From the NCBI GenBank assembly GCA_977016875.1, contig CDRNST010000148.1:3844001-3908000 (forward strand): a stretch of DNA of 64,000 nucleotides. The letters run 5' to 3'. Made by a program: the position numbers and the translations under genes. Below the pieces are notes generated by a model. That model was not told the origin of the DNA. It saw nothing but the letters and a program-made list of their open reading frames with translations, and made no database searches. This DNA is from Pavona decussata (Eukaryota). Of this stretch, positions 24,492-45,900 are shown piece after piece; the first letter of the stretch is position 1; each line of letters begins with the position of its first letter.

Positions 24492-27154
24492 GCTGCTAGC
24501 CACGTTCAAGAAAAATAAAGAAGAATATATCATCACTCATTAACTTTATTAGTGCTTGATGAATGACCAGGAATATACCGTTGAAAAGCTGTTACAAGAC
24601 ATAAGTGAGAGACTAAGATGTACAACTTCCTTGTTTGAGGTGAATTTAGATGCCCTCTCCACTGGTTTCCAATCATCCAGTGAAAATATGGAAAGCAAGC
24701 TGACTGTCTTTTACTTCAGGTGCAAGATCTCCGAAGAGAAAAACAATAATTATTGACAAGCCTTACATGACAAGGAACCTGAAATAGCAACTTAATTTCT
24801 TGACACCATGAAGAAGACTTTATTCTGATTTTGAGTACACTTTTCACGCCATTTGTTGGTGTGAGCTTGTTAAAAAGTTTCAATTGTTGTGTTATTCTTA
24901 ATTTATCTGTAATGAATTATTATTAGTTATATTTGTTAACACAATAGGGTTGTTTTTGTCAACATCTGAGTAAGGGAAACAAGTTTTGAAAGAAACTTCC
25001 ATCATCATGTTTTAAAATATTAAAGCGTGTGTTGTTAGCTCAGTTTTACGTATGCCCATATGTATTTCAGTATCTTGCGTAGAAAGGCCAAAAAACTGTA
25101 AGCCAAGTACTAAAAAGGACTTTTTTTCTTTCAGTTTTATTGGTCAATTAATTAATTAACAACAAACTATAAATATGAAAGAAAGAAATGTGGAACGAAA
25201 GACCAAAAGGGTTAGCGCGAACGGGATATGATACCCATGCGAGGCGCAACCCCAACCTAAAAAAAAATCAAGTAAAAATTACAATTGAGAACACTAATAA
25301 AAAACACGAAGATTACGAACGGTGGCACGGGCAGTCACGGGAGAGGAACAAGGTGAAAGGCATGTCTATGTCAAAGGTGATATCTAATAATTGTGGTATC
25401 TACTTCCTTGAAACCACGTTTTACAGGCATGCGAAATCGAGGAAAGGGTACTCTTTGAACATTGGTTAAGCACCGAAAGGCGTGAACAGAATTGAAATGG
25501 AGGAACAAGCTGGGAATCGTACGATTTCATGTTTTCTGCCTGAACCCCTGCAAGAACTTGCTGTTACCACTGTGATTGTTTTTTGGTTCAGTGTATGCAG
25601 ATACAACATCAGGAAATAAAGCACTTCCTTGTTTCCTTATTCAGAATTTTTTAAGGAACATTTGCGGCCTTCTGCGAGAAGTCACTTAAGATTAAACCCA
25701 AGTAACACCCACCCCCCACCCCCAGAGAGTTTGGGGATTTACGTAAGGGTGTCTGATAATGGATTGGTGTCCATACGTTTTTTCCATACTTCTCATTGGT
25801 TACGCCTATTTCTACCGAGTATGCAAAAGGATTCGCGTTTAGAGTGCTGCGACGGTCTGTGATCCAAGATATGGATTCACGCGGGAAGTTAAGAGCGTGT
25901 GAGTGAAGCGTGTAAGAGATACCAGAAGCTACGCCGGATCAATGGATTTCGACAAGAGCCATAATCATGGCTCCTGATTTCGACAAAGGTATCTGGATCG
26001 AGAAACAGCTGCTTGTGACAGTAGTCAGAACAAAGTATAGAGGCTTTCCTTTTTTTCTTTTTCTCAGAGAAAAATGTCGTCTTTATCGGAAGAGCAGTAA
26101 AAGTTTGCATAATCGATCGGTTGATTCGGGAAATGGTTAGAGCTTGGCGGCAATACATTAGAAATGATGAGGCGATTTGTCTGCATCAAGGCCGTTAACT
26201 GTACTTAACCTAAGAGCGAGCCACCGTTAAACGCCTAATTCTGTGTCTTTTGTGGAGAGGGATATCATTAGGCTTCGCTTAACAGCTCCAGTAATTTATT
26301 CGGCTCTTATTAACTGACTAAGGTTTTACAATTTGTACCTTTATTTAACCGATGACAGCGAGAGCGGTCTAGCGTGGCCAACGCGGAGTGCGCGAGCAAT
26401 GGCACAACAGACATGAACTCGTGGATGCAAGGAGAGGGCTTAAAAGAACGTTTATTACAGTGAAACCCTTAGCTTATTATAACAAAATGAAAAGAAACGA
26501 AACGAACTAATACTAAAACAAACGGAATGTTATAAAAACACGTGAACATATAAAAACGGACTATTACAAAAACGGAGTTATAAAAAGCAGGAATGAGTTA
26601 TGTACATGCTTTACAACGGCACAAACTCCACTAACCAGAGCATAACTACCACTGGGGAGCGAGCTACCACAGGTTACTCGAACAACACTCTGCTCCACTC
26701 AAATAAACTGAGCTAAACAACTTGTATTTATACCGGAGTAAGGGGCTATTAACATGATTCCGGAATGAGTTTCATTCCGGAATGAGTTCATTCCATCTCC
26801 ATATATTTCTCTGCATCTGCCCCCCCCCCCCCCCCCCCCACTGAAGCCCTAAATGTAGGCTTGATGACACGGTTCTGCTGGGACCGCGGAACAAATAGAA
26901 TAGATTTCTAGATGTCTCCAGATTTTTGTACTCCGGGGGTTGACAGGTATGAAATTGTGCCCTCGCACAAGTCATTCTGGAATGAGTTAATTCCGGTTTT
27001 CAATCCGAATGAATTTTTCGTTCTGGTATGACATTTCATTCTGGTATCATGTAAAGTGAGAACGAACTTCGTTCCGAGATGAAAAATCGCCTGCGGCGAG
27101 TAGCGCATGCGTATCTTTTTCAAGATGGCGGATATGAAAGTGAAGAAAGATTCG

Positions 27155-28601
27155 TAGTCTGAAATGTCAGCCGTCTCCTCTCCCTAACCCACAGGGGGCG
27201 CGGGAGAGAGAGACGTCTGAATTCCGAGCGTTATAATGTCGTCCGTTGACGTCACGTACTTTTGCGAATATGGTAGGTAGTTTTTGATTGGTTCTTCCCT
27301 AATTGAAATAGATAACCATTTCTTACTGGTCAAACTTGCGAAAACAGATATTTTATTTCGGCGGCGAATATAAAGTGTTGACAGGCCAGACACAACTCGT
27401 AAGTTCCTGGTGAGAAAAGTGACTTCTCGTTTAACGTGGTTTTGCTCTCGCGAGTATATCTCTTAAAAATTTTCCTTTTTGGTATGAGATAAGTGGGAAG
27501 CTCTTTCAATATTTCTCGAGCCGGGTGGTAAGTTGTGAAGATGGGAAGAATTTTATTTCGCACTTTCTCGTTTTGTTGCAAAGCCGACTTCCGTTCAGTG
27601 AATTTAATCTCAGAGGTTATTTTTTTCAATGAGATTGTGTTGATAGCCTCTTGCCTGAAGGCGCGTTTTGAAGTTGGTGGTATTGCAATAGAATAATTTC
27701 ACTGAGTAGTTGGTTCTCAGAAGTCTCAGCGATTCTATAATCATGCGGGAATCTTTGACATTCGCACGCACTTTAAACCTACAGAGACCTTCCAGTACAC
27801 ATTTTTTTTCCTGCCACCCACCGGGGTCAGAAAAGGACTAATAAAAAATAAAGCCCTGAGACTTCTTCGAAACACCTCCTCTGCAAAATCATTCTATTAC
27901 AACATCATCCACTTCAAAACGCACTTTTGGGCTAGAGGCTACCCTCACAATCTCATTGAAAAAATAACCTCCGATTTTCGCTGAACGGAAGTCGGCTTTA
28001 CAACAAAAAGATAAAGTGCGAAACAAAATTCTTTCTTTTGTCATAACTTACCACCCGGCGTTGCCTAACCTCAAAAACATCTTGAGGAGCAAATGACTTT
28101 AAATTCAAAACCAACCATTGCTTCGAGAAATATTCTGGAGGACCTACTCTTATTTCATATATACAAAAAAAAAAAAAAAAACCAGTCAAAAACAGCAAAA
28201 CCATAACGAGAAGTTACATTTCATACCACCATACCACGTTAATATGAGTCGTGTCTGGCCTGTCAACACTTTATTTACTAATAACATTTATCGGAATATT
28301 TTTCAATTCATCTTCGGTGGAAAATGAAGTGCGATCCCGTGCATACTTTCTTAACGCTTTGTCTTCAAATTTTACGGCTCACAAAACGCACACAACCTCC
28401 TACATTATGCATGCTGCAATGCTTCCATGCGCTTCCAGGACTAGTGGCCGCCATTTGGTTTCAATGGTTTTTATTTATGCAAATTTGCATAAATTACTGT
28501 GTGACGTCAACGGACGACATTATAACGCTCGGAATTCAGACGTCTCTCTCTCCCGCGCCCCCTGTGGGTTAGGGAGAGGAGACGGCTGACATTTCAGACT
28601 A
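27155..28601. mobile_element. Non-autonomous TIR element (TAG..CTA ends, 9-bp target duplication; Academ/AcademH-like)
   Basis: ~100-bp perfect TIRs TAGTCTGAAATGTCAGCC...GTTGACGTCAC; target duplication AAAGATTCG at 27146-27154 and 28602-28610. Confidence 0.9.
27770..28150 (+). pseudogene. Penelope-like element RT C-terminal/linker remnant (frameshifted); an inverted partial copy lies at ~27440-27720 (-)
   Basis: Translates as KPTETFQYT..CHPPGVRKGLIKNKALRLLRN..ARGYPHNLIEKI..ERKSALQQK..TYHPALPNLKNIL..IQNQPLLREIF. The minus-strand ORF 27330-27629 contains EIKFTERKSALQQ..LPIFTTYHP. Confidence 0.75.
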
Positions 28602-29638
28602 AAAGATTCGGTTTGTAGATGGAAATGGGACGCAACGAAAACAGAAAATTGCTGGACGTTTTCATTAGCTATAAGAGGCAAAAGTTGGGAGAAGAAGTGG
28701 AATGGGACTCGGATAAAGTAGTGCTGGTCTAGCACGTTCGAAGTGCTTTAGCTGGACAGTGGCCTGGCTGAAGACTTTGGCAAAAGCCATTCCATTAATA
28801 TGCACAACAATGTTTCGTGCAGACTCGCGCCATCTTTGTTTACTGATGCGCGGGAACTTAAACCACGTGAGCCAGAGTCGGTCGATTTGCACATGTGAAT
28901 GCGGCACGAACTTCATTCTGGAACGAAACTCGTTCCGGAATGAGTTTCATTCCGGAATCATGTGAATAGCCCCTAAACACCTACTGCTTATGTGACAGGA
29001 AAAGGATTGTCACAAAACAAACAGAAAGATTACGGCGGCACATACCTGGGACATACCTATATAGCACGTATATGGGTGTACCCTCCCCCCCCCCCCGGGA
29101 TTACATAATAGCTAGCTACGTAAATTTTCATCACACACTACTTGATAATTATAAGATTAAAATAACTGAACGCCCTAATGACCTACTGATGATATCATGC
29201 AATGTTGCTACAAGAAACAGAAAACTGTCTTCTAATCCCATATACAAGGAAACCAAGGCTAGGAAATAGTGAACCTCACCCAAATGTAACACTTCAGCAC
29301 GTGATAAACTAAACCAAACTCACGTCTGCAATAGGTCAATGATAAAAATAAACACTTTAGACTACTAAACGTGAGACGAAAATATTCTACAACGATCTTA
29401 GAAATAATTCAGAAATTGCCTTTGGGAACTGCAAAGTGACTCGGTCACATTTAAAAGTTTTACCGTACACTTACATAGTTCAGAGAAAAATAAGAAATAA
29501 ACAGTATTTTAAGTAGGTGTAGACCAGTCGCGCGCGCTACTCGCGGCTTGCGCTTTGAATATCTTGCGTTCTTCTCCTCGGGTTCTCGAGCAGTCGAAAC
29601 AGTACTCAGCCAGCAGTGCTTTTATGCCCAGCCGAACT

Positions 29639-30208
29639 TTAAGCCACATGCAAATTTTCCATTGGTCTGATCAGGAGTATATCGTCAAAGTCGACGCCTG
29701 GGTTCTGTACCGGGAAATAAGTAAAACGTTGGCATGTGAGGGTGGCGTTTACAGTGTACCGGTCTGCGCCATCTCTAACAGTAGTGCTGCTAAATTGAAC
29801 ATGAGCCACGTACTTTTGCTTGTGATTGAAGATCAACATCTTCAGGAACTCGGGCTTTTGTTGTCCTACTCTTTTTACGTAGTTCTTGTATGTTTCATAT
29901 TCAAAGAGGCAGGCAAAAGCCTCGCGGATCTTTTGAATTTGACGGTCTCGTTGCTGTAGTCCTGGCGGCAGCATATAACAAAGGTGAGTGATCATATTCT
30001 CCCTCACATCAGCTTTGGCCGAGCGGGTAAAGTCGCAAATGCGGTTTTTTTCTCGGTAGTCAAAGGTTCTTTCATGGCATTTGACATAATCTTGGAAATC
30101 AATTTTCCCCCTTTTTAACCCTTTCTTTAAAAAAGCCAGGTTGTCGGAATAGTCAGAAGTCGATTGCGAGTCCTGCCTTGAGCTTACGATTTTTATCATT
30201 CTTCCCAT
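29639..30208 (-). CDS. Uncharacterised 189-aa protein (single coding exon; probable non-coding exon at ~31010-30835)
   Basis: Uninterrupted 570-nt ATG-TAA ORF. Acceptor CCTCTGCAG (exon starts at 30225) lies just upstream of the ATG, and a donor AG|GTGAGA lies at 30835/30834. No family recognised. Confidence 0.6.
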   Translation of the reverse strand: MGRMIKIVSSRQDSQSTSDYSDNLAFLKKGLKRGKIDFQDYVKCHERTFDYREKNRICDFTRSAKADVRENMITHLCYMLPPGLQQRDRQIQKIREAFACLFEYETYKNYVKRVGQQKPEFLKMLIFNHKQKYVAHVQFSSTTVRDGADRYTVNATLTCQRFTYFPVQNPGVDFDDILLIRPMENLHVA

Positions 30209-30261
30209 TCTTCTAAGTACTTGTACTGCAGAGGCCGTGCAGAGGTAGCCCAAGCTCTACG

Positions 30262-30672
30262 TAGACTGCAAGCAATCCCTTTCAGTCGAGATGGTATGCT
30301 TATAGCGCAGAGAGGAGAAATAAACGAGAAGAGACTGAGGGAGAGAAGGAAAAGAAAGGAGTGGAGAATGTTATCTATTAGCTGTCATTTTTAATTGGAT
30401 TTTAATGGGTAATTGTGGGCGGAGTTACTCTGAACGCGTCTGTTACAGCTAAGAGCGCAGTCCCTTTCTTTTCCTTTCCCCTTTTTTCCGCCTCTCCCCA
30501 AGCCCCCTTCCGCTCGTTCGCTCTAGTTATTTTTTTCGCGCTCGGCTATTTCGCGCGACCTCTCGACTAGCCTACGTGTAGCCGTACCCACCCCCCGAAG
30601 AAAAACGGGGGGTGGGTACGGCTACACGTAGGCTACCTCTCGACTATCCAGAAAGGGACTGCTTGCAGTCCA
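30262..30672. mobile_element. TAG..CTA-type MITE with a 9-bp target duplication
   Basis: AGCTCTACG|TAGACTGCAAGCAATCCCTTTC ... GAAAGGGACTGCTTGCAGTCCA|AGCTCTACG. Confidence 0.85.
30568..30635. mobile_element. 68-bp palindromic mini-MITE nested in the previous element
   Basis: CCTCTCGAC|TAGCCTACGTGTAGCCGTACCCACCCCCCG..CGGGGGGTGGGTACGGCTACACGTAGGCTA|CCTCTCGAC. Confidence 0.9.
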
Positions 30673-31214
30673 AGCTCTACGATTTGTGTTGAACTTTGTA
30701 ACGCAAACATAAGCGTCACGTAATTTGAGCATCAAGATGACCGTTGTGTAACAGCGAATTATAAGGGAGAAGAATTATTGTATTTGAAGGCACAATAATA
30801 TAATAGAAGCGATTTTTCATTTAAAATTTCTCACCTTTTGTGTCCTGTGTGGATTTTGGGTCGATTTGAGGCGATTTCAAGGGTTTTCAGTTCCAACAGT
30901 TGGGCGACTTGTGCTGTACCAGGAGCCATAATTCTAGCTGTACTACATGGCACAACAGGACAGTCCAGGAGCCAAGAGAACGAGATTGTAACAAACGAGG
31001 GAGACGGGGACTCGAGATAGTTTTCCAGGGTTTTGAGTTCACAGTGTATGGAATCAATGAGGAATTAAAATATTAACATGCTCTGGAGTAACTCTTTAGG
31101 CAAGCTACAAGTCTGTTAAAACTATCGTTATTTTGTCAGTCTCCACCGAGGACCTGGGTGGGGCAGGGGGGGGGGTATTTCTGGAATTCGTCCCGTCATA
31201 AAAATGGAATTCTC

Positions 31215-31785
31215 GTCAACGGCGAAGACGTTTTCCCTCTATATACTTTAGAAGCGCAAAATTTCGCAGATATCAAAATGTCATTAATTGACAGGGGAAG
31301 TTTCCATCTTTATATCTATTGGAAACGCAAATTTCGCAGCTGCTATTAAAAAAGATTAACGTCAAGATTTTACTTCCGCATATCAGTATACATGAAAGGC
31401 AAATTTTGCAGGAGATCAACGGCGACGTTTTCCTTCTGTCAGTATATATTAGAAGTGCAGATTTTGTAGTTTTGAACTATCAATAACGGCAAAGTTTTCG
31501 TACATATGGAGACAACATAAATTTTGTAGTTATCGAAAAACAATAAAAAAACATTTACGGCAAAATTTGTTTACTTCTGTACATATTTTGGAAACGCAAA
31601 ATTAAACAGCAAAGTTTTCCCTCCATATATGCTAGAGATGCACATTTTGCATTTATAAATTTTATTGGAAAAACGCTAACGGCAAAGTTTTTCCTTCGTA
31701 TATTTTCGAAACGCAAACTGATTTCGCAGTACAATGTTATTGAAATATTAAAATATGATTCCAACGCAGTTTTCCCTTTGTATCG
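31215..31785. repeat. Degenerate tandem array, about 9 units of ~55-80 bp
   Basis: Recurring AACGGCAAAGTTTTCC..TATAT..GAAACGCAAATTT(T/C)GCAG. Confidence 0.7.
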
Positions 31786-33354
31786 GTGAGTATAAAAAAG
31801 AGGAGATTAAACAGTTAAGTTGTACAATTCGAGTAGTTCTTATCGCCAAAATGCAATGGTGCCAGTGAATCATGCAAGACGGCCGGGTAAAGGTCAACCT
31901 CGTTAGGAAATTTAAAAACAGGCCGTACTGTTATACATGTAACATATGCATCCCACGGAAAGTAAGACGGAACTCTGCTTGCAAGCATAAAACGTTTAAC
32001 TTTTATTGACATTTTTTAGAACCTATGGTGGTAATTTGAAAAATCTCTGATTTTTTTGCAAGCTGACTGAACGAAAATTTTCTGAAGCTAGGTAGGATAA
32101 TGTCCAGACGATGAACATTTTGAACTGCAACAAAAATATTATCATAGTACGTCTGTCTGAAGGCTTCATAGGAAAAAAAAAAAAATTAAACCAGTTATTG
32201 ACCTTTGTCCTGGGCAAGCAAATCGCCTCCTCTGAACTGAGCAAATGCGCACGCGACGGAATTAAGTTCTCAAATCATTAATAATTCATAAGAAAAAATG
32301 GAAATCACTAATTATCTTTAACTATGTTAAACGTTTGCTTTGATTTTCTCCAATAATTATGGATGGCTTGAGAAGCTAGTCAACTACTCGAAAGAGTGTT
32401 TCATTCGATTTCCAAACACCTTGAGGCTCGTATGTTTCTCCGGCTTCTCGGTGTTTGGAAATAGGATGGAGCACTCGTACTGCTTTTTATATATTACTTG
32501 AAGGTCAGCATTTGAAATATGGCTGTTTAGTTCTTGCTGTTTGCTGGAGTTTAAAAGCAACTGTCTAAGTCTAAGGACTGAATTTTTTAAAGATACTTAT
32601 ATAATTTCCTTTGCAATTAATAATGAGAAAAAAATTCCAACTTTCAATAACATCTCAAGCCAGAGTATTTTTTTCTGTCAAAAGACAGGAACTGAATACG
32701 TTTTGGCCTGTTTGACGGAGAGGCGATCCTGTGGACAAAATTTTGTTATTTTTCCTCTCAGAAAACAAAAACACACCGTGTATGAGTTTTTAACCCAGGA
32801 AGAGGTTTTCCGTAGTGGCTGCAGCTTAATTTTCGTTAAAATTATAAAATTTTAGTGTCCAGCTTTCAAATCAGTATAATTATTTGTTGACAAGAACATT
32901 ATATTCTGCCGACAGTTTTTTGCGGAAATTTGTATTTTTTTTTGTCATATGATTTAAGCTGATAAAATATCACGTGACAAAACGTCTCGAATGTGTCGTT
33001 CAAAACAAAAACGTCCAACACCACTTGACAAAGATTCCGTGAGGGAATCGAAAGCTCGTGCTTGAACATAAATTTTCGATCCTGAAAAAGAAACCTTTTT
33101 GTTGACATGATATGATAAGATCAAGAAACATTTTTTCTCTCTAACATATGCATATTAATTGTAAATTCAGCGAATTGCTATTGTTTAACCCAGTTTTGAG
33201 GTTAGACAGGTCATTGATGCGCGCGAAATTTCCATTGATAACTGAAACAAAAAGCGCGCGAAAATGAAACGAAGTTAATTGACACCTTTTTAACGCTGTC
33301 AAACGTGCAACCAATCAGCATTCAGATAAACATTTAAACAACCAATAACAATCG

Positions 33355-33374
33355 GGGCATGCTTGGACAAGTTC
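33355..33374. promoter_or_regulatory. Perfect p53-family response element in the putative MDM promoter
   Basis: GGGCATGCTT GGACAAGTTC equals RRRCWWGYYY twice with no spacer. CCAAT boxes (~33311, ~33342) and an ETS-like TTCCGG (~33398) flank it, and a probable 5'UTR exon lies at 33643-33700 (TAG|...|GTGAGT). Confidence 0.75.
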
Positions 33375-35207
33375 ATGTACTCTGTTAAGCCTGTCATTTC
33401 CGGTTTGATCCACATAGCTTCCGTTGCGAGGAAGAAAATTGAGGTTTATACCTAAGCGTGTACTGGTTTTAAAACAAAAATTGGAAAGCACTGACATTTA
33501 GGACGCAAAACATTTGTTGAACTCTTCTATGTGAACTTAGTTTAGCGATCTGTTATGGTTTTGTTTAGTCTACGTCAGATTTTTGCCAAGAAATCCGTCG
33601 AATAAAAAACGGAGATTAAGATAATACGTAGATTCTCCTTAGGTCTTTCTCAGGATCACAGCTTCGGGAACAAGTTTGTGCTGAAAGCAAGAAAATCCAT
33701 GTGAGTTGTGCGGACCGGGTGAAGGACAGGAGAAGTGAGGGTTATGGACGGTGGATTGGTGGAGAAGAAGGCTTGGTAGGCGACTAAACTTATAACTACT
33801 TTGTATTGCTGTTAATTTTTCGTCGGGTTAAAAAATGTTGTTTCATCAAGGGTTCCTGAGTGAGCGAGCTTTCAAATTTCTCTTGAATGGCCGAAGTGTG
33901 TTTATGGAAGCTTAATTGGAGCAAAATTACTATAACTCTCCTGTATATGTAACTTTTCCTTTTCCATCCCAACCTGTTTTGCTCGGGCAAATTTTTTATG
34001 TTCGTTGAATCTTTGAGTACGAAAAATGTGTTGGTTTAACGAACAAGGGTATTTTGTTTTTCAATTTTATCGCACAGTTAACTAATCTCGTTCTTGCTGC
34101 AAACTTCTTTCCGAAATTGCACATTAGAAAGCCATATTGCCATCAAATTTGCTGTAGGATTGACTAATCCCATTCCCAACGCTTCATATCGGCAAGACTT
34201 TTAATTCACGTATTTTACGAGTGCTAAGATTTACAACGATCAAACTAGTTTTGACGTTGAGTATTTTTTCGAACACGAATGGACACATCAATGCAAACAC
34301 GCACGTAGATTAGCTTTGCCTCTGAAAATGTTGGGAAAACTACATGAGCTAGAGAAAAAGTTTTCTATCCTGAAAATTACTCTCAAAAAATTCACGGGTC
34401 AGAGAATATGACCACGTTGAATTCAATTTTTTCCCCATTCAAACCACACAGCGAGTAATATGACGTTATGAAGAAATATGTTTTCTTGTTGGTGGAGTTT
34501 CATTTTCGTTATGATTTTGACAACCTTGTTGGATTTTTGTGACATTGTAGAGCTTGTTAAATGAGACTGTATTTTACTCATCGCGCCACGCGCTTGAAAT
34601 AAATCCCAGACATTATAGCTGAAGCTGTCGATTTGGCCGCCATTAGCTGAAGTGTTAAAGGTCGCTTTCCCACGCTAGACTATAACCCCTATCTAATTTC
34701 GGCGCATTCTTGATTCCTCTTCCTTCTCAGTTACATCAGATTACAAAGCATTTTGTTTACAATTTTTAAAAGGGCTGAACTTCGACAAGGTTAAGCTCTT
34801 TTCTTTTCGATTTTCGTGAAGTGGCTGCAATCCTTCAAATGGATCTTCGCTAATGTTATTGGAAGACAATCTTGGTGACAGTCTCTCTTATTCTCTGTTT
34901 TTACTTTGTTACTTGTCGATCTTGGTGTTCTTGGCAATGAAACACAGAAAAATTCAGTATATTGAGTTCCAAAGTTGTAGTATTCATTTTTTGCTGAAAA
35001 TGAACGCTTTGTAACAATACCCCAGGCCTCGTGTTATTAGCATTTTGCAAATACTCTTGTTTACCATGTCGACCTCAGTGAAAACCCGATGCGTTCGATT
35101 TTCTGCAAAAAGAAAAGCGCCAAGTTGGATTTGGAAGTGAAATACAAGAAAGAAATGACGATCGGGCATTGCATTCTTCCGAGATTACTGCGAAGTATTG
35201 ATATTTG

Positions 35208-35240
35208 TAGCAAGTCGAGGCCTGTCTTATAAACATGTCT
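35208..35240. promoter_or_regulatory. Second p53 half-site cluster upstream of the MDM coding exons
   Basis: TAGCAAGTCG (8/10), AGGCCTGTCT (9/10), 3-nt spacer, AAACATGTCT (10/10). Confidence 0.5.
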
Positions 35241-38200
35241 AAACAAAGAGCTTGCAGCCCTGCAGATATTTCGCTGTTTAGAAAAAACAGTCATTAGTGC
35301 CTGGTCTGGTTCGTTGCCCGCGAGTGATCAAAGGTGCTGGCAAAAGATTGCTTCTGAGGGATGTCAGTGTAAGCTTAAATGTATAAGTTAAACCTACAAA
35401 TTTTGTTAACCAACTAACATATAATGCTTATAGCCACTTTTACATTGTGGGCTCTCTTCAAGGTTTTTCCCTTGTGTTCAAAAATTTTTGGACCCATTCA
35501 TTTGCATAATATATTGATCAACAAAAATGAGAAAAGTGGCCAAATCTTTTGAATAACTGTACGAATGTTGACTGTGCTCTCCCTAATTTTCGTCATAGCT
35601 GAAATGCCCACAAGATTATCTTTACAAACATGTTTCCTTGGCTTTTTCTACCACAGAACTTTAATCAATATAGCCCTATCAACAAACACATTTTTGTGTT
35701 CCCTTAAGACGGATGTTTTTTGAACTTGAATGGGCTTGCAAACCCCTGTGGGTTCACTAGGGTGGAGCAGAATTCAACAATCCTATGTCATTCTTTCAAC
35801 AATACTAGCTTAACTGTGATACTTCATGTGAGGCATAACTGGAATTACACTGAAATTAATTAGATGGCTGATCTGTTGTAATCTCAGTTGGACTTCATAA
35901 AATGTTCTCTTTAAATACCCGCCTCACACACCTATATTATTTTTATGTGGTTTTCTTCCAAGATCCAACAATATTTTTTTGAGAAAAAGGCCATGAAGTT
36001 TAATGCCCTTCAATGGCAAAGTGTTGCTGCTGCTGTTAGCTTTCATTTTTAAATAGTTACCCTTCTGCCATGCATCCAAAAACTTTGTGCTGAAGGTGGT
36101 TTGGATTTTAGCCAAAGAGGCAAACCTTGTACGACCTTGTATAGCTCAATAATGAAAAGAAATATTAACAGGATGTATTTAAAGGCGGGTATTTACTGCA
36201 TGGCCAAGAAGCTTTGGTTAATTTCTTGAGGATTGCCACACTTAAGGATTTTACCAATCCACAGACTTATAATTAATGTTAAAACCACTTTTTAAGCTTA
36301 ATTACAGGGTTTTAATGATCAGATCAGAAGACTGAAAAAAAATCATTTCAAGGAAACAAAATCTTGAGAGAGGGATTCAGGCATGATTGCAGATGACATC
36401 AAATGTAGTAAGATCAATAAGTGACTTTTACATCTTCCATGATCCATAAGTAAACAGACCCTGAGAAAAACAGATTGTATTTTTGTTTTCTACAACAACT
36501 GAAACATCAATTTGATATCACAGCATTACAAAAAAAATTAAGATAAATTGGAGTAGTATTGTAATCTCAAAGGAACATTGTTACTTGAACTTTGCTTTGT
36601 TGTAGTCAAAATTAAATAAATTTTTGATAAGATGCCTTTGTTCAAATATAAAATTTCTCTTAGAGCATCAAGAAGAAAATTAATTTAAAGTGATTTCTCT
36701 GGGGAAGAAGAAACCTAATCAGATTTTAGCATATTTTTTTGGTACAAATCTTGAAAAGTTGAAAACATTGGCCCATGTTTTAAAGTTGCAGTCCATTTTT
36801 CACTCTGGTTATCTTCAGCCAAGGATATTTACTTTGAGTTTCTGTTCACTAGTAGAGTACATGTAATTATAATTAATTGTTGAAATAAAACTGGATCATT
36901 ATTTGAACTCTTCCCTTGATACAAATTTGTTCTATGGTTGTTCAAAGTGGTGCAAAAGTTATGTGACATTTTACACCCTTTGATATTAGTCCAATATCTT
37001 TAAGAGGTTTAGAATCTAACCTGGAATCCATTTGGAAAGCTGTCTGGAGCAAAGATCACTGCATCTGATCATCAGCTTTCATAGATTTTTCCTGTGTAAA
37101 CTGTCACCTCAAGTGTGTCATTTGGGATGATTTTTTAGCTAAGTTCTTGTTGAAGTTTTCTAATTAATCTGTAAAGTAGCTCATAAAGTTCTGATGCACT
37201 TTGCCATTCAGACAGTGAACTCTGTACCCAGTTTTTGCCATCTTTGTCCTTGCATATGACTGTGTCATAGAACACCATTCGACAACAACCAATCAAAACA
37301 AATAATTTAACATAGTTATTAATAACGTAAGGCAAACTCCAATGTCCATAGAACACTTTTTCATGTGATGTTACCTCTTGAATGCTTAAGATGTCTATAG
37401 CCAAAGTTTAGTCTTCACTATAATGAGTAGATTAGGTCTGCAGCAAAGAAATTTCTTCTACTTAATCTAACAGAAACAAACCACTGTGGCTGGCTATCAC
37501 CATAATAATTATTATTTCTTTACATATTCTAAGCGTGTTTTCCATTGAAAGGCCTTGGCATTCATTTCGCTAAGTTCGCAATGCTTTGAGTATCTTGAAC
37601 ATGGTAATGTTTTCCAGGGTAGCTGCCTCCATTTTTTCTTTACTAGCTTTGGGCCTGGTTTAAATAGTTCATCGATATCATGATCATTCTATTCATGCCT
37701 AACTAGCACAAAGGGTAATTTTTATCGCTGAGTGCTTTCCGCTCCTCTCTGTAGGCCACCATGCCACTTACAGGTTACCTCCCAACTCTTCCAGGATAAA
37801 TCTTACCTCTCTCCTTCTCAACAATTCTACCCCAAGTTAAAGTAGCAACCTGGAAAATTCTCTTTCTGGGTGAAAGCAAAAATTAAACAGAAAAATCAAA
37901 ATGTAATTTTACTTTTCTTATTACAGTGAAGTACTGATAGCTCCACAGTGTGACAGTTCCGACAATGAGCAAGGTATGTACAAAACAAAATAAAGTAGGT
38001 GCTCTCTAAAGTGTATGCCCTCATGACCAAGAAATACAAAGTATTGGCACAGCGCGAGAAACAAATCCACAGCTCCTTTTTATTTTCCACCTACTCCAAA
38101 AGTTAGTGACAATCCTGCAGTTTCTAACCTGCAGTTCAGGTTTATCATTTTTTATGCTTTTTTTGGACGAAAGCCAAGCATAAGCAGAAGGGGAAAATAA

Positions 38201-39232
38201 TGCCTGTATGCACATCATTGTTTTAGTCTTTCTGCTCCCAGACATACCTTGAAATAAAACACCAGTCAGTGGTTGACAAAGGTAGCACAAAACCTGTTTA
38301 GCAGACCCCATATAATTTTGACATTATACAGGATTGTAAATATCTGGATATGATTTTTTGTAACTTAACTTTTTAGAAAATGTAAAGCACTGAGGGACTT
38401 GGTGATAAGCACTACACAGTGTATAAGCTTTGTTTATTGTTAGTATTTTATTATGTTGCAAAAGTCCACTTGGTATGTAGACTGCAAGACGTTATTGTTT
38501 TATGTATTTCTGAGTGAAAACGATGTCTATCTGTAAACAAAAGCATAGAAGAAGCTTTTAAAAGTGGAAAATACATTGTAACTGCAGTTTCTGTTCTGTA
38601 CTGCTTATGTCCCAAACTGTTTTCAGACTGCAATAGCAAGAGTGGGAGTTAACTCAATATCAATGAAAGGATTAATGTGACCAAAACACAAATATTCCTG
38701 ACAAGAAACATACCATCCTGCAACAATAACAAATGGCTGGGTCGAGCATAGCAAATTTTGCAAGATCATGACAGGGTGTAAAACTATTGGGTGCTTAAAG
38801 TAAACAGAGCCACACAAAAATGTATCTTTACTACACCTTTCAATAACATCCGGACTCTGAAGTTCAAGATTCAACCAACCAATACACTTTTCACTGCTGT
38901 CAATCACTGCAGTGGACCTCTAAGAAAACAAAAACATTTGGCTCACCAGATCAAAAGGTCATGTTAGTGTGCTGTGGTTGGCAAATTTCGAACCACTTCC
39001 TCGACTTCTGTACATTGTATTTCTTGCAGTCAGGTGGTTGTCGCCATAATTAAGATTGACAGCAGTAAAACACGCAAATCGTTAGTTGGGTTTACTTTGA
39101 CCTTGAGAGTCTATTTGTTATTGAAAGGCATAGGAATGCTGCAAATGAGATAAACAGGGAAGTTGAAAAAACAAAAGGTCAAGTTCAAAATTCCCTGACA
39201 AAAGGTTTTTGTTATCCTTCAATTTTTTTCAG

Positions 39233-39327
39233 GAAGTTTTTGTAACACACCTAAAAAGCCATTGAGGAAACGGAAAAGAGAATCTTTGACAGGTATGTTT
39301 TGGCAACATTTATTTATGTATTTTCAG

Positions 39328-39383
<56 letters not shown>

Positions 39384-42300
39384 GAAAAAAAGCTACAGTA
39401 TATGGACAATTTGTAAAACAGTTGAAGATGCCATCTTAAATAAATCACCCTTAAATCACCCTTAAATAACGTTTTTATTCGATACAGCTTCCTCTCCCCA
39501 GCTCAGATGCCTCTACCATAACTGTATTGTTGTATTGTGCTCTTGGGCAGGATTACAACTTTGGGAATATCATAGTTTGCTTGATTTGGGTGTGTGACCT
39601 TTCCACGTTAAACTGTTTTAAGTGACGTTCCCTTGGTCATTTGATCAGCAAACGTTTTTGGTTTCTTTTATTAAAGATATATATCCTATTTGTTTATAGA
39701 AGTAATTTAAGTGTGAACATAAAAAGTAAGTGGCATTTTTTTATCTAGATGCTGCAAAAGGAAGCTACACTCCCCCTCGACAAATTGGTTGGGGTATGGG
39801 GTTCTCTTCAGTCATATCAGAAAGTGAGAGTGAAAACTCTGAACCTTACAGTGCAGTGTATTTGGTCAAAGGGTACGAATCAGCCGTGACAGCCATCATA
39901 ACAGACTCTGAAGATGACCTGTTTTTTCTCAATGGTGAGTTTGCCAGTATAGTTAATTATTTGGTGCATGTTTTACTGGAATCCCTCCCCACCCCCCTCT
40001 CGTTTCTCTCCCTTTAGCAGACAGGGGAACTTTACCCTCAATACTCACAAATCCTGTTTTGCTGCCTGCATGGACTACTGGAAAGCATTTCAAGAGGATC
40101 TCCATAAGATACGCCAAGTTGTACATCATGCAAACTATTTTAGCGGAAAAGAATGAGTCATTTTAATTTTCCTAAACCTTGTTCATGTGCTTGACTGGCT
40201 GGTTAGTTTTCTCATCCAGTTTATCATCAACTGGTTGGTTGGCTAATTGATTGTTTGTTTGAGTTCTTACTGACTGGTTAAGGGTAACTGACTGGCTGAC
40301 CGACCAACTGACTCACTGACTCACTGACTGACCAACCATCTGACTGACTGACTTACTGATTGACCGACTGACTGACTGATCAGTTCACTATTTTGATTGG
40401 AAAAAATAGTTGGTTACAAGTCTTTCTGTCCATTGATTATTTGGTTAAATGTTTAGTTGATTGTTGGTTTGACTGTCTAATCAAATGACTTAAATTACAC
40501 ACAGAAACTGTGGAATTTGAGCCACCTGGTTCTGATAGTGAAGAAGAGGAGGACCAGAATGAAGAAGAATCAGAAGATGAAGGTATGGGGCTGAAGATTG
40601 GCAAGGATTCCCCACAACAATTTGAAGACATGAGAAATTTTGTACTACAAATGAGTGAATGTACCTTTAATTAAGTATCAAGCTGAAAGACTAGTTACTG
40701 CAGAAGAGCACTAAATGGGGGAAACTATTTAAAACAAAATGGCAAGATAAAAAGGTTGCATGTTGTACAGTGTATGCTCCGTGATTGCCTTGCTTGAGTT
40801 ATCATGACATTTTGTCTTTCCTTAGTTCCAAAGATAGATAGATGAGATAGAAAGTTAAATGTTTAGCTTCTTTGAAGGTAGAAGTGTCACCAAGTTGAGC
40901 TATACTCAGGGTAATAACGAGCATCCTGCGGCTGTAATTTCTTTTAAGTTTTTATTCTTTTTGTGTTTTGGTCTTGCATGTGGCATGTATGTATGTAATT
41001 ATGACAACAAATTTTATGGGTATAAATAAAAGAAAAGAAACTTTGCCAATTAAAAAAGTGGGCCCAAACTGACCGGAGGCAGACACGTTGATATTGATGC
41101 GATGATGTACAGTGAAGGTGTCCCCATGTTTGACTTCAGTGATAAGTATTTTTGCTCAGTGTGAGAAATCTTCAAGATAAATATTCAGTATAATGTATTG
41201 ATTGCTTTGATGTCATTTTTCTGTCTTGTTTTAGTTGTTGTAAGCAGCTCAGAAGATGAGGATCCCGGCGCAGAGGGTGGAGATGAATATGAAGAAGACC
41301 AGGAGTCTGATTCAGATATTGACGAAGAGGATCTGTGGTCCTGCCCACAATGTAACCTCAAAAACCACCCAATGTCACGGCAGTGTGCTCGTTGCTGGGT
41401 TGAAAGACATGAGTGGCTTCCTCACTTGAAAAGGTGCGTATATATTGTTTAATTTTTATATGAAACCTTGAGTCATTGAAAAGTTTCAAGGCTGTTGCCT
41501 ATCAGGAGCCCAGTAGTCTGGGGCACCTAAGACATTTCTCTGGGCACCTAAATTGTTTTGCAGTAGCGTCTAGCATTTCATAGGCTGGGCTCAGCCTTTG
41601 GGTTTCTGGGCTCCTTGAAGTTTTACTTATTTTGGCAACAGCCCTGGTTCTTCTAACCTTGGAATCGGGCTATGAGATCCTAAATTACAAATTTTAAAAT
41701 CAAAATGTAAGCTATATTAAGCATTGCTTTGTTGCTCTCTTGTTTATTATCAGGGGCACCCAACAGATCGTTTAGGTAAATTATCTGTTCGTAAGGCCCT
41801 TAATCCCCTACAACTTTCTAAAGGGAATTTTCACCTCGAACTTTCTTAAAAGGGGAATTTTAAGGCCTAGTGTTTTTGGATTGATAAAAATGTCGTTTCG
41901 GGTGCCGAAAAAAGGTCAGCTAAGATTTTCGGAAGGGAAATAAGACCTAAGGTTTTCGGGAAATGGACAAAGATGCCCTAGTAATTTCGAAAAGACTCAA
42001 GCTCCCCTAGAACTACCGAACAGATAAAAATATTTTAGCGCGGCCTGAAATGAACCTACAGAGCTTTAAAGGCACTCCAGATAGACTAAAACTGCGTTTT
42101 AAAGGATTTGAGAGAAAAGTTTCGTTAGGTGCCCCTGTATTATGCCACCATACAAGGTGGTTTTAACTTTGGAGATGTGGATCAAGTCCTAAATTGTGTT
42201 CATGTGATAGAAAGCTGTTAAGCATTACTTTTCTGTGGTGCTGTTTCTTTATGCTTTACAAGGTGGTTCTAACTGTTGAGACGTGAGACCATTTAAATAA

Positions 42301-42910
42301 AAGTGTCACCCATTATGCTGTGCACCCTGATTCTAAGAAGCTTTGTAGCATTTGCACAATCATTTTTCCTGAGAAAATGAGGCCACCCTGTAGGCGTCCT
42401 GTCCATTACCACAAACATTTTTTTTTTCGCAGATTGTCTTCAGAACCAACTGTTGATCTGTCCAGAGTAACAGGAAATTCATCTGTTTTGCCATCACTTC
42501 AAAAATGTCCCTCACTTGCTGTAGCACCAACTATTGAAAATCCTTCATCATCGACATCATCATCACAATCAGTAACTCTTACTTCACAAGCTGCTTCAAA
42601 TATTATGATTGCTCCTGCATCAGCTGAAAGAGATCATCAAGAACATTTGCATCGTTCAGGACATGCATCAAGTCTGAATAACACTGTACAGAGTGTAACT
42701 ATAAGCTCTGAAAAGAAAGATCCTGAGCCTGCCTTTTCTCCAGACTTGTGTGTCATTTGCTTGACGCAACCTCGAAATGCTAGTTTGGTACATGGAAGAA
42801 CTGGCCATCAGGTTTGTTGCATTGGATGTGCAGAAAAACTGAAGGAAAACAAAAAGAAATGTCCAGTATGCCGTAAGAAAATTAAGCTCATTGTCAAAAA
42901 TTTCTTCTAA
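39233..42910 (+). CDS. MDM2: MDM2/MDM4-family RING E3 ligase (start codon not firmly located)
   Basis: Exons 39233-39292, 39749-39934, 40505-40582, 41235-41433, 42433-42910. It has a basic NLS-like KKPLRKRKR, an acidic domain, a RanBP2-type zinc finger DLWSCPQCNLKNHPMSRQCARCWVERHEWLP, and the C2H2C4 MDM RING CVICLTQPRNASLVHGRTGHQVCCIGCAEKLKENKKKCPVCRKKIKLIVKNFF*. Confidence 0.92.
39329..39383. repeat. (GAT)n microsatellite in an MDM intron
   Basis: About 17 perfect GAT units, downstream of the donor at 39293. Confidence 0.95.
41751..42137. mobile_element. hAT-like MITE
   Basis: TATTAT|CAGGGGCACCCAAC ... GTTAGGTGCCCCTG|TATTAT, apparent 6-bp target duplication. Confidence 0.7.
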
Positions 42911-45900
42911 TTCATGTCCCTGTGCCCTCTCCAGTAGAATTTTTATAACTTTTAAAAGTTCTGTGAGGGCTTTGACCATTTTCATTCTGACAAAATCTGA
43001 CTGATGTTACAAGGGAATTAGTTTGTGGTAATCCCGTTAAGATGTAATTTGAATGTCATTTTTCCCATCCTTCCATATTCGAAGATCTCCATGCAGTAGC
43101 TGTTTTCTCTTCATGCCTCACTTCAGATGCCTCCTCTCCTTTTCTTTGTTGGCCAAGCATAAGTTTGCATGGCTTCTTCAGGCAACTTCTTCAAAGTGTT
43201 GTTTTCTACTACTTTTTTGCCAGGCTGGTGCTTGGTTGTAAACATCAGCTTGGCAGAAGGTTCATGGTTTGATGGCTGTTGAAAGTGATTTGAGCTCTAC
43301 AGGTTAAGAGCTTGAATCAGTGTGCCAACACACCTTCATCACAATTCATACATGTAACATCCACTCAGTTACATAAATGGTAGCAGCTCGTCCCAGTGCT
43401 AGAGGGTAACTTGCGGTGTAGCAACTTGAATCCCATTCAGGGAAGGTTACACCTCAAACACTGGCCAAGCACTTGTGTGGTGTGTAAGACTCTTATCCTT
43501 TTAACTTAACCTTTAAGCCATATTTTCTGAAAGTGTCTGTTTACTACAGCTATTACTTTTAAATGTTAACCCATAATTGTTGTAACTATTCTTGGTTGAA
43601 AAATTGTAACAAAAACACGACAGTGAAATCTGGGAACATCTCTTTCACGCCAGTTTTCAGCTCACTTTCATTCAGCCATCCAAGTCACTGGTGTGGATGT
43701 TAACTTTGAATTCCTTTATGTGCTGTAATATATCAAACACAGGGTGGTAGGTTTGCCTAGTTTTTTTAACCAACTTTGAGATGCTCAGAAATCGGATGAA
43801 ACATTCCTTCAAGTGTGTGATATACCGGTAGCTTCTCAAGCCATTAACAATTCTTGGAGAAATTCAAAGCAAACGTTCACCAGAGTGATTCACTGTAGTG
43901 AATGCCTTTGTTTTCTCTCATTAATTATTAATGAGCTCAAGAAGGAATTTTCAAAAATGATGTGAATCAGCAAGACAGGTCAGTCATGAATCTTATGTAA
44001 TAATGTCGTATTACATACTGTGTATAATTATGTTTTTAACATTGATGTAGTTTCCGTTTGGGAACACATTATGTAATGTTTTGTTTGTTTTCAGGGTTGT
44101 TTGTTTGAAATGAATAATTGGCTTAAATTAAGCAACAATTCATGAACTTACCTTGAAAATCTTTAACTGGTAGATGTCATGTAGTTGCATAATAGTAATG
44201 ATTATTTTTGACTTAGTTCAATGCATTAGTGTAGCTTAGTTATTATGTTAGAATTATAACTGAAAATAGGAGACAGTTGCTTTTATTTGCAAGTTATTTT
44301 AGCTTAAGGTGTTAAGTACATTAGCAAAAAAAATAGGCCACTTTTACATAGTCATTGATGTGAACATCACAGTAGTATAGATGATTTCCATTGCTGCCAT
44401 GTTGGTGGACAAAACAAAAGAAAATGGCAGTGATCTCCCAGAGGAGAAAAAACTTGTTGTTCCTGTCCACCAACATGGCCGCCATGACGTCACATGCAAA
44501 CCATTAATAATTGACAAAAACTGGAGCTTTTAGTGCATGGAAACAGGAAATTAAGAAAACGTTAACTTTTATAGCAGATGTTACAATAGCATGTGTCCCA
44601 GTCAAAAAACTAATATAAATATTTTCCTAAAAAGATTAAATTTTTGAAAGTTATTTTAGGAATTTACTTACTTTTTTTTTTTGGTTACTCATCTTAACTG
44701 AAAATCCACAAAGATTCAAAATGTATTGATGCTTCTTTGAGCAAAGAGCGACATAGACAATGGTTTGAAGATTGAGGCTGAATACAGTGACACCATGCCG
44801 CTGAGATGCTAACCATTTTTTTTTTTTTTTAAACTCATTTGAAGTAAATGTGTAATAACTGCAATTATTTTATCAATATCAGGTTATTGCATTCATAAAA
44901 AGCATTCAAATTAACAATTATTGTCCCAGGCCTTGGTGCCATATAGCTGATAATTATTGCATAGCCTGCATGGTAGTCTCGATAAAGGTTTTATATCCCT
45001 TCATATTACTCATAAATATGCCTTTGTAAGGTTATTGTGTACACCACATTGTGACAAAAATAATCTGGGTGGTTTTAATCATCTTTTTGGTAGTTGATAA
45101 TGATAACATTGTGGGAAGCAGGTATTCATTTATTACGTGTTTAGTAGTGTTCTCTACTGAAGCAGTGTTGATTATGAAATCTGTTTAAAAGAGAAAGACA
45201 GGTTTTTTCATTTATTAGCTGAGCAGAAAGTTGTATCACAAATACTAAAGGACGAGCGTTAACCATCCAATATATAGTTTATATTTTTTTATTGGAAGTC
45301 TTAAAACTGTCAACAACAGTTGTTTGTTGTTGTTGAGCAACGATTTTGACATGTTTGTTTTTTTTCCTGTGCCTCTTTTTTGCACAAGCTCTTTTGGGGG
45401 TCACAAAGCAGTTTTCCAGAGCCAGGAATAATTAGCAGGACATTCGTGTCCTTACACATTTGGACAGACATCACCTTTCGTGATGTTATTTTACCTGAGA
45501 CGCTTCCATCAGTATCAATGGAGAACCAAAGGATTAGCAGGGCATACGACATGTACAGACAATACATCGCACAGCTAAATTTACCTCAAATCAAAAGAGC
45601 CTCACTTACAAATAAAACCGGGGATTTATACCGCTTTTGATATAAGTTTTTTCAAGAAGCAAATGGGAGTGGTTAACAATTTAGATCCTTCAGACAAAAT
45701 CGGAATCAGTAAGAGCACCGACATAAAGCCCAAGCGAATTAAGTGTCCACCGACCAAAGCTTTTTAAAGTTTTGCTTTCCACACGTTCTGGCTCTTTGTG
45801 ATAACCAATTGAGTGTGACCATCGGAAAGGATGACACGACAAGAGGCTTGGAAAACAACTAAAAAGATGTCAAAACGTTGCAATACAGTATATACCAAAA

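Follow-up and report, generated by a model that had tools for sequence, protein, structure and literature searches.

A conserved candidate p53-family response element in the MDM promoter of a reef-building coral

Analysis of a 64,000-nt stretch of the Pavona decussata genome (hereafter the window) indicated that a 20-mer at positions 33355-33374, in the proximal promoter of the single MDM2/MDM4-like gene of this coral, probably works as a response element of the p53/p63 type. A matching site occupies the same place in other corals and in two sea anemones, so the p53 family probably already controlled MDM transcription before corals and anemones diverged. We envisage that a tetramer of a coral p53-family protein would bind the two abutting decamers of the element and that, once bound, it would raise MDM transcription, the trigger being p53-family activation, for example by DNA damage. 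Any action of MDM back on p53 would have to work without the N-terminal SWIB pocket. A preliminary description of this DNA had proposed a p53-to-MDM feedback loop. The transcriptional arm of that proposal is supported by the candidate site, its link to MDM and its conservation, whereas the loop in its classical form may not close, as the coral MDM has no SWIB domain.

The element reads GGGCATGCTTGGACAAGTTC on the forward strand and matches the consensus RRRCWWGYYYRRRCWWGYYY at 20 of 20 positions with a spacer of 0 nt. Its two decamers are GGGCATGCTT, which has a CATG core, and GGACAAGTTC, which has a CAAG core, and the site conforms to the El-Deiry consensus of two RRRCWWGYYY decamers 0-13 bp apart. 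A search of both strands found no other spacerless RRRCWWGYYY pair at 20/20 in the 64-kb window, and dinucleotide-preserving shuffles of the window did not yield any 20/20 match (0 of 100). The perfect, spacerless match reported in the preliminary description was thereby confirmed.

To relate the element to a transcript, contigs from four public RNA runs of the coral were aligned to positions 33300-39299. A 1470-nt contig (run X11, record 9) covered 33445-33774, 37926-37971 and 39231-39292 and continued with letters matching 39749 onward; it thus joins the exon beside the element to MDM exons 2 and 3 and runs into exon 4, so that the link from this promoter to MDM, previously a supposition, is now supported by RNA. 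The GT..AG joint between exons 1 and 2 (33774/5 to 37926/7) was present in runs X1 and X11, and the GT..AG joint between exons 2 and 3 in runs X1, X5 and X11. The X11 contig and the window disagree at 9 of 330 bases. As to whether MDM transcripts begin elsewhere, the RNA contig places the MDM 5' exon at 33445-33775. The start codon is at 33744, 370 nt 3' of the end of the element, so that the first coding exon is not about 5.9 kb away, as had been thought. Likewise, the exons proposed at about 33420 and at 33643-33700 proved to be a single exon of at least 33445-33775, with its donor at 33776 and not at 33701.

The element therefore lies upstream of a spliced MDM RNA contig, with 71 nt from its 3' end to the 5' end of the contig. 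The latter is the terminus of one assembled contig from one run and, as contig ends do not define a true start, exon 1 may begin slightly more upstream than 33445. Positions 33300-33444 were covered by no contig of the four RNA runs. Based on the proximal CCAAT box at 33342 and the ETS-like motifs at 33398-33434, the natural reading is that transcription starts somewhere in 33400-33445, and the element would then lie at roughly -40 to -90. The ETS-like cluster sits between the response element and the 5' end of the MDM contig and is likely the transcription-start zone of MDM.

The layout of the MDM gene was obtained by tblastn with a Montipora Mdm2-like protein (P0003, 359 aa, named E3 ubiquitin-protein ligase by NCBI), the closest full-length relative found for the RING exon. 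This gave seven exons, whose splice sites were read directly (Table 1). The coding lengths, with the frame checked exon by exon, total 1080 bases, equal to 359 aa and a stop, and the N-terminus of the product, MDGGLVEKKA, matches that of P0003. The KKPLRKRKRE stretch of exon 3 is likely a nuclear localisation signal. The zinc finger of exon 6 scored below the PF00641 cut-off (21.7 bits against 27); its CxxC...CxxC pattern is shared with named MDM proteins.

Table 1. Features of the MDM locus and its promoter (positions in the window).
Feature	Position	Strand	Basis
E2F-like site 1, GCGCGAAA (TTTCGCGC on the opposite strand)	33221-33228	+	Direct reading; kept in corals
Conserved CCATTGA motif	33232-33238	+	Invariant in 5/5 species of the promoter alignment
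E2F-like site 2, GCGCGAAA (GCGGGAAA in both anemones)	33256-33263	+	Coral-anemone block ranked second
Distal CCAAT box	33311-33315	+	Direct reading; kept in corals
Proximal CCAAT box, 9 nt 5' of the response element	33342-33346	+	Direct reading
Candidate p53-family response element, two abutting decamers	33355-33374	+	20/20; sole window match; single copy; position conserved
Three ETS-like motifs, TTCCGG (33398-33403), CTTCCG (33418-33423) and AGGAAG (33429-33434)	33398-33434	+	Direct reading; first two kept among corals
MDM exon 1, 5' UTR and first 32 coding bases, ATG at 33744	33445-33775	+	RNA contig, joints
Imperfect p53-type half-site cluster, MDM intron 1, +1.46 to +1.5 kb from ATG	35208-35250	+	
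MDM exon 2	37927-37973	+	Joints in X1, X5 and X11; tblastn; splice sites
MDM exon 3, basic KKPLRKRKRE stretch	39233-39292	+	RNA contig, tblastn, splice sites
MDM exon 4	39749-39934	+	Loose end of RNA contigs past 39292 matches 39749 onward; homology
MDM exon 5, acidic	40505-40582	+	Homology, AG/GT boundaries
MDM exon 6, acidic stretch and RanBP2-type zinc finger	41235-41433	+	tblastn, splice sites; PF00641, 21.7 bits
MDM exon 7, C-terminal RING, stop at 42908-42910	42433-42910	+	tblastn, splice sites; PF13920, 47.3 bits

A run of GAT codons at 39331-39384, which would encode poly-Asp in the frame of exon 3, is intronic and does not belong to the MDM acidic domain, because the RNA contigs exit exon 3 at 39292 and resume at 39749. 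A separate segment of intron 2, at 38830-39093, had a summed contig depth of up to about 550 with many loose ends in all the RNA runs, and looks like an expressed repeat or a fragment of a mobile element.

The CCAAT and ETS-like neighbours previously described for the element are indeed present, as two CCAAT boxes and three ETS-like motifs (Table 1), and in Nematostella and Actinia a CCAAT box likewise lies 5' of the p53-type element. Based on the two E2F-consensus sites, the second of which is conserved in all five species compared, MDM may be cell-cycle regulated in anthozoans. No divergent gene sharing the promoter was found upstream of MDM, a 204-aa ORF at 29639-30253 had no Pfam match, and no Rfam RNA family was matched in 30000-44000.

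The N-terminus of an Acropora muricata Mdm4-like isoform X1 (P0168; …RSLMRAKFPLI…) corresponds to the translated E2F-like promoter block (33145-33264 of the window), so at least one Acropora gene model begins upstream of the response element. If that start is real, the element would be intronic for this isoform, an arrangement nearer to the vertebrate P1/P2 layout.

The coral locus resembles that of vertebrate MDM2 in having a p53-type decamer pair beside the MDM transcript start with ETS-like motifs nearby, and in the target itself, an MDM protein with an acidic region, a RanBP2-type zinc finger and a C-terminal RING. However, the vertebrate MDM2 elements are in intron 1, before the inducible internal P2 promoter, whereas the perfect coral element is in the promoter of the ATG-bearing first exon. 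The coral arrangement is thus not of the P2 type, in which elements in intron 1 precede an alternative first exon. Coral intron 1 holds only a weaker, conserved cluster of half-sites, of which the sole perfect one is AAACATGTCT at 35231-35240, and clusters of this kind were also found at +1.2 to +1.55 kb in Orbicella, Oculina, Actinia and Nematostella. An alternative first exon spliced from 35208-35250 to exon 2 was not seen in the four RNA runs, whose contigs cannot prove absence. The coral protein also differs from vertebrate MDM2 in having no SWIB domain.

Conservation of the element was assessed at the orthologous MDM loci of Orbicella, Oculina, Nematostella and Actinia, with distances measured from the MDM ATG. 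The site is at -389 in this coral (GGGCATGCTTGGACAAGTTC, 20/20), at -377 in Orbicella faveolata (L009; GGACATGCTCGGGCAAGTTC, 20/20), at -407 in Oculina patagonica (L007; GGACATGCTTGGGCAAGTTG, 19/20), at -353 in Nematostella vectensis (L005; GAACATGCACAGACAAGTCT, 19/20) and at -368 in Actinia tenebrosa (L008; GAACGTGTACGGACAAGTCT, 18/20), where the copy carries a CGTG core. When the five promoters were aligned with MAFFT, the element was the top-conserved 20-column block between corals and anemones. Ranked below it were the E2F-like site (GCGCGAAA or GCGGGAAA), GATTCTCC in the 5' UTR, CCATTGA and the CCAAT box. We regard this coral-to-anemone comparison as the strongest single argument that the element is conserved.

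Further coral sequences came from metagenome contigs, which were retrieved via the flanking E2F-like motif and not via the element itself, to avoid bias. Eight contigs were found, seven of which extended far enough to be informative; the element was 20/20 in six of these and 19/20 in the other, and in each it lay 93-94 nt downstream of the E2F-like anchor. Together, the metagenome and the named species provided eight distinct coral sequences with the element. Conservation of the 20-mer upstream of MDM, which the preliminary description had left to be checked, was thus seen at the same distance from the ATG in two other named corals, seven metagenome contigs and two anemones.

A search for octocoral or medusozoan MDM with the N-terminus of Actinia MDM matched only Actinia's own isoform. 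A search with P0158 led to P0196 and to locus L021 (9940-11236, GCA_949826985.1), where an intronless copy of a SWIB-bearing MDM is 65% identical to P0158. This locus was rejected for promoter comparison, being intronless, carrying an in-frame stop and looking like a processed retrocopy; no p53-type site with two or fewer mismatches was found in its vicinity.

The p53 DNA-binding domain (PF00870) matched four loci in the coral genome. One p53-family exon translates to a stretch with FMCFSSCASGPSRRP and RVCACPGRDRK, and its comparison with the human p63 DNA-binding domain, for which there are solved structures, was gapless at SSC..NRRP and R.CACPGRDRK, with RVCACPGRDRK being identical. The genome thus encodes a p53-family factor with intact DNA-contact residues. 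In the work of Pankow and Bamberger (2007), nvp63 from Nematostella was found to bind the canonical vertebrate p53 site and to drive a reporter, and it was responsive to UV (PMC1964547); a cnidarian p53-family protein thus recognises the vertebrate consensus that the coral 20-mer matches. Their reporter, unlike the site studied here, carried an artificial consensus and was assayed in human cells; the paper identifies no native cnidarian target site and makes no mention of Mdm2 (PMC1964547). In addition, Mdm2 and GADD45 rise together under heat in aposymbiotic Aiptasia (bioRxiv 10.64898/2026.05.19.726363), an observation that fits the idea of p53 acting on MDM and is circumstantial, proving nothing.

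A unique perfect site, GGGCAAGTTTGGGCATGCTT, was also observed on the minus strand of contig C7 (L020 3545-3564; G000:C7:3061544-3061563), where the exon of a p53-like gene lies about 3.35 kb downstream. Within 3 nt after the site comes a textbook E2F site, TTTCCCGCCAAA, with TTTCCGG further along, and the arrangement may represent autoregulation of a p53-family gene via the same promoter grammar. An open frame upstream in this C7 gene (L019, G000:C7:3058054-3058191, minus strand) reads ...EPMLSQETLNAVFEDLL..., which we take to resemble the SQ-containing TAD1 region of vertebrate p53, with its hydrophobic i, i+4, i+7 pattern. Such a TAD1-like frame would sit uneasily with the published absence of a TAD in cnidarian p53.

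The return arm of the loop was considered from the protein side. A profile search for SWIB (PF02201) gave no match in the window and only an unrelated locus on another contig, and tblastn with the SWIB-bearing Actinia MDM and with P0158 identified no N-terminal or SWIB-like exon in the window. The MDM RNA contig passes directly from exon 1 to exon 2, with no SWIB exon between them. The coral MDM of 359 aa therefore lacks SWIB, as does the MDM of Nematostella, which makes the protein arm of the feedback loop doubtful. In agreement with this, Åberg et al. (2017) reported that cnidarian MDM is without a p53-binding domain and cnidarian p53 without a TAD (PMC5543598). With cnidarian p53 reported to be without the MDM2-binding TAD (PMC5543598, PMC10303687), the classical loop may not close. 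That a p53-MDM feedback loop closes in the coral, without the N-terminal SWIB pocket, is possible and somewhat doubtful.

A p53-family protein may bind the element with no negative feedback resulting, the SWIB-less MDM not acting on p53 and serving some other purpose, for example the ubiquitination of other substrates or germline/developmental p63-like programmes. We consider this rather unlikely. It fits the lack of SWIB in coral and Nematostella MDM, and it agrees with surveys that report no p53/MDM interaction domains in cnidarians and hold that MDM probably does not regulate p53 there (PMC5543598, PMC10303687), as well as with the role of nvp63 in germ-cell death (PMC1964547). However, the coral MDM retains its acidic region, RanBP2-type zinc finger and C-terminal RING. 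In mammals, the acidic region of MDM2 makes a further contact with the p53 core domain, and ubiquitination requires it. Moreover, Actinia tenebrosa retains a true SWIB in the same gene, behind a matching element: its isoform X1 (P0166) scored 39.3 bits with PF02201 against a cut-off of 25, and the SWIB exons are at L008 10420-10497 and 13208-13363 (gene 10001-14776, GCA_009602425.1).

With its SWIB, Actinia runs counter to the claim that cnidarian MDM is generally without the p53-binding domain. As Actinia keeps SWIB behind a matching element, the simplest and most likely reading is that both the element and SWIB were present in the anthozoan ancestor, with the SWIB exons being lost later in stony corals and in Nematostella. 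If this is true, the state of cnidarian MDM without a p53-binding domain would be a lineage loss and not the ancestral state.

We tentatively suggest, as a reading with nearly as much for it as against it, that p53-to-MDM wiring has been fixed about 350-400 nt upstream of the ATG since before the coral-anemone split, outliving the loss of SWIB. Based on the Trichoplax adhaerens sites at -320 to -540, it possibly dates from before the placozoan/cnidarian/bilaterian split. If the wiring did outlive SWIB, either MDM would restrain the p53 family via its acidic and RING parts, or p53-induced MDM would have had an older job than the control of p53. A conserved MDM-promoter element argues that the p53-family and MDM genes stay coupled transcriptionally, in contrast to what the surveys suggest (PMC5543598, PMC10303687). 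This coupling is testable, as Nematostella transgenics and knock-outs exist and the 20-mer can be mutated. For a reef-building coral, the element is also a candidate for a native target of the p53 family, and would offer a read-out of DNA damage or heat stress if induction were confirmed.

A literature search found no paper describing a p53-type site at a cnidarian MDM gene. The closest earlier case is the placozoan Trichoplax, for which Siau et al. (2016) described putative p53 elements TXRe320, TXRe350 and TXRe540, 320-540 bp upstream of Mdm2; Tap53 binds these TaMdm2 upstream sites in vitro, and they were discussed as evidence for an ancient loop (PMC5039725). Upstream sites of Trichoplax Mdm2 being already published, the anthozoan site is a further case of a known kind of element. 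The two cases, compared by description only, are alike in that both are non-bilaterian and in their spacing, the sites being 320-540 bp upstream of MDM in Trichoplax and 353-407 bp from the ATG in anthozoans. They differ in that the Trichoplax sites merely resemble the consensus, with no between-species conservation shown, whereas the cnidarian element is perfect or near perfect across two orders. Conversely, the Trichoplax sites were bound in vitro, whereas the cnidarian element is a candidate site. In addition, TaMdm2 has a SWIB domain and the coral MDM does not.

With respect to the identity of the factor that reads the element, the block might be a conserved promoter element read by a non-p53 factor, or part of a larger NF-Y/ETS module, with the match to the p53 consensus being incidental. 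Among robust corals, the entire promoter block of about 200 nt is conserved and the element no more so than its flanks (between this coral and the robust corals, only 33208-33400 aligned out of the 7.4 kb at 26000-33400), and in every species compared a CCAAT box adjoins the element, both of which are as such a module would predict. However, the conservation between corals and anemones is specific to the two decamers and their 10-nt register. Positions 4 and 7 are C and G, respectively, in both decamers of all five species, and the substitutions elsewhere are mostly purine for purine or pyrimidine for pyrimidine, within the R and Y classes of the consensus. To our knowledge, no other factor family has this dimer-of-dimers motif. 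As the genome also encodes p53-family proteins with intact DNA contacts, we consider a non-p53 reader improbable and favour a p53-family protein as the factor that would recognise the site.

The genome-wide frequency of perfect sites bears on the value of the match itself. Base composition gave a chance rate of about 0.003 perfect sites per 64 kb, which agrees with the figure in the preliminary description and with the 0.0045 per 64 kb obtained from a reversed-pattern control (42 sites in 602 Mb). The whole 602-Mb genome contained 225 perfect sites, against the 42 of the control. Among the matches listed (50 of 225), about four-fifths were from one repeat family (AGACATGCCCAGGCTTGCCC and close variants), from which it follows that unique perfect sites occur at about chance frequency, approximately 40 per genome or 0.004 per 64 kb. 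A perfect match alone is generally no sign of function here, as non-repeat sites are at about the control frequency genome-wide, judged from the 50 of 225 matches listed. With regard to the concern that the site might lie in a repeat, positions 33150-33750 were single copy in the genome, which places the element outside this p53-site repeat family. That the match is a chance occurrence without function could appeal to the roughly 40 perfect sites expected in 602 Mb and the similar number of non-repeat sites, but we consider it extremely improbable and close to refuted by conservation, because with about 42 chance sites expected over the whole genome the odds of one of some 40 random sites falling within 500 nt upstream of MDM exon 1 are about 3 in 100,000, and because four other anthozoan genomes, two of them from anemones with barely alignable flanks, carry the element at -353 to -407.

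One copy of the AGACATGCCCAGGCTTGCCC repeat family was examined at L018 (G000:C5:346600-352700), where perfect p53-type sites are present at 1067-1086 and 4971-4990. Inverted terminal repeats, each about 700 nt long (at roughly 929-1642 and 4454-5128), were present in this copy; each contains one of the perfect sites, and an ORF between them has a C2H2 finger and weak similarity to packaging ATPases of the A32/IVa2 type. It is possible that the family is a mobile element and disperses p53-type sites.
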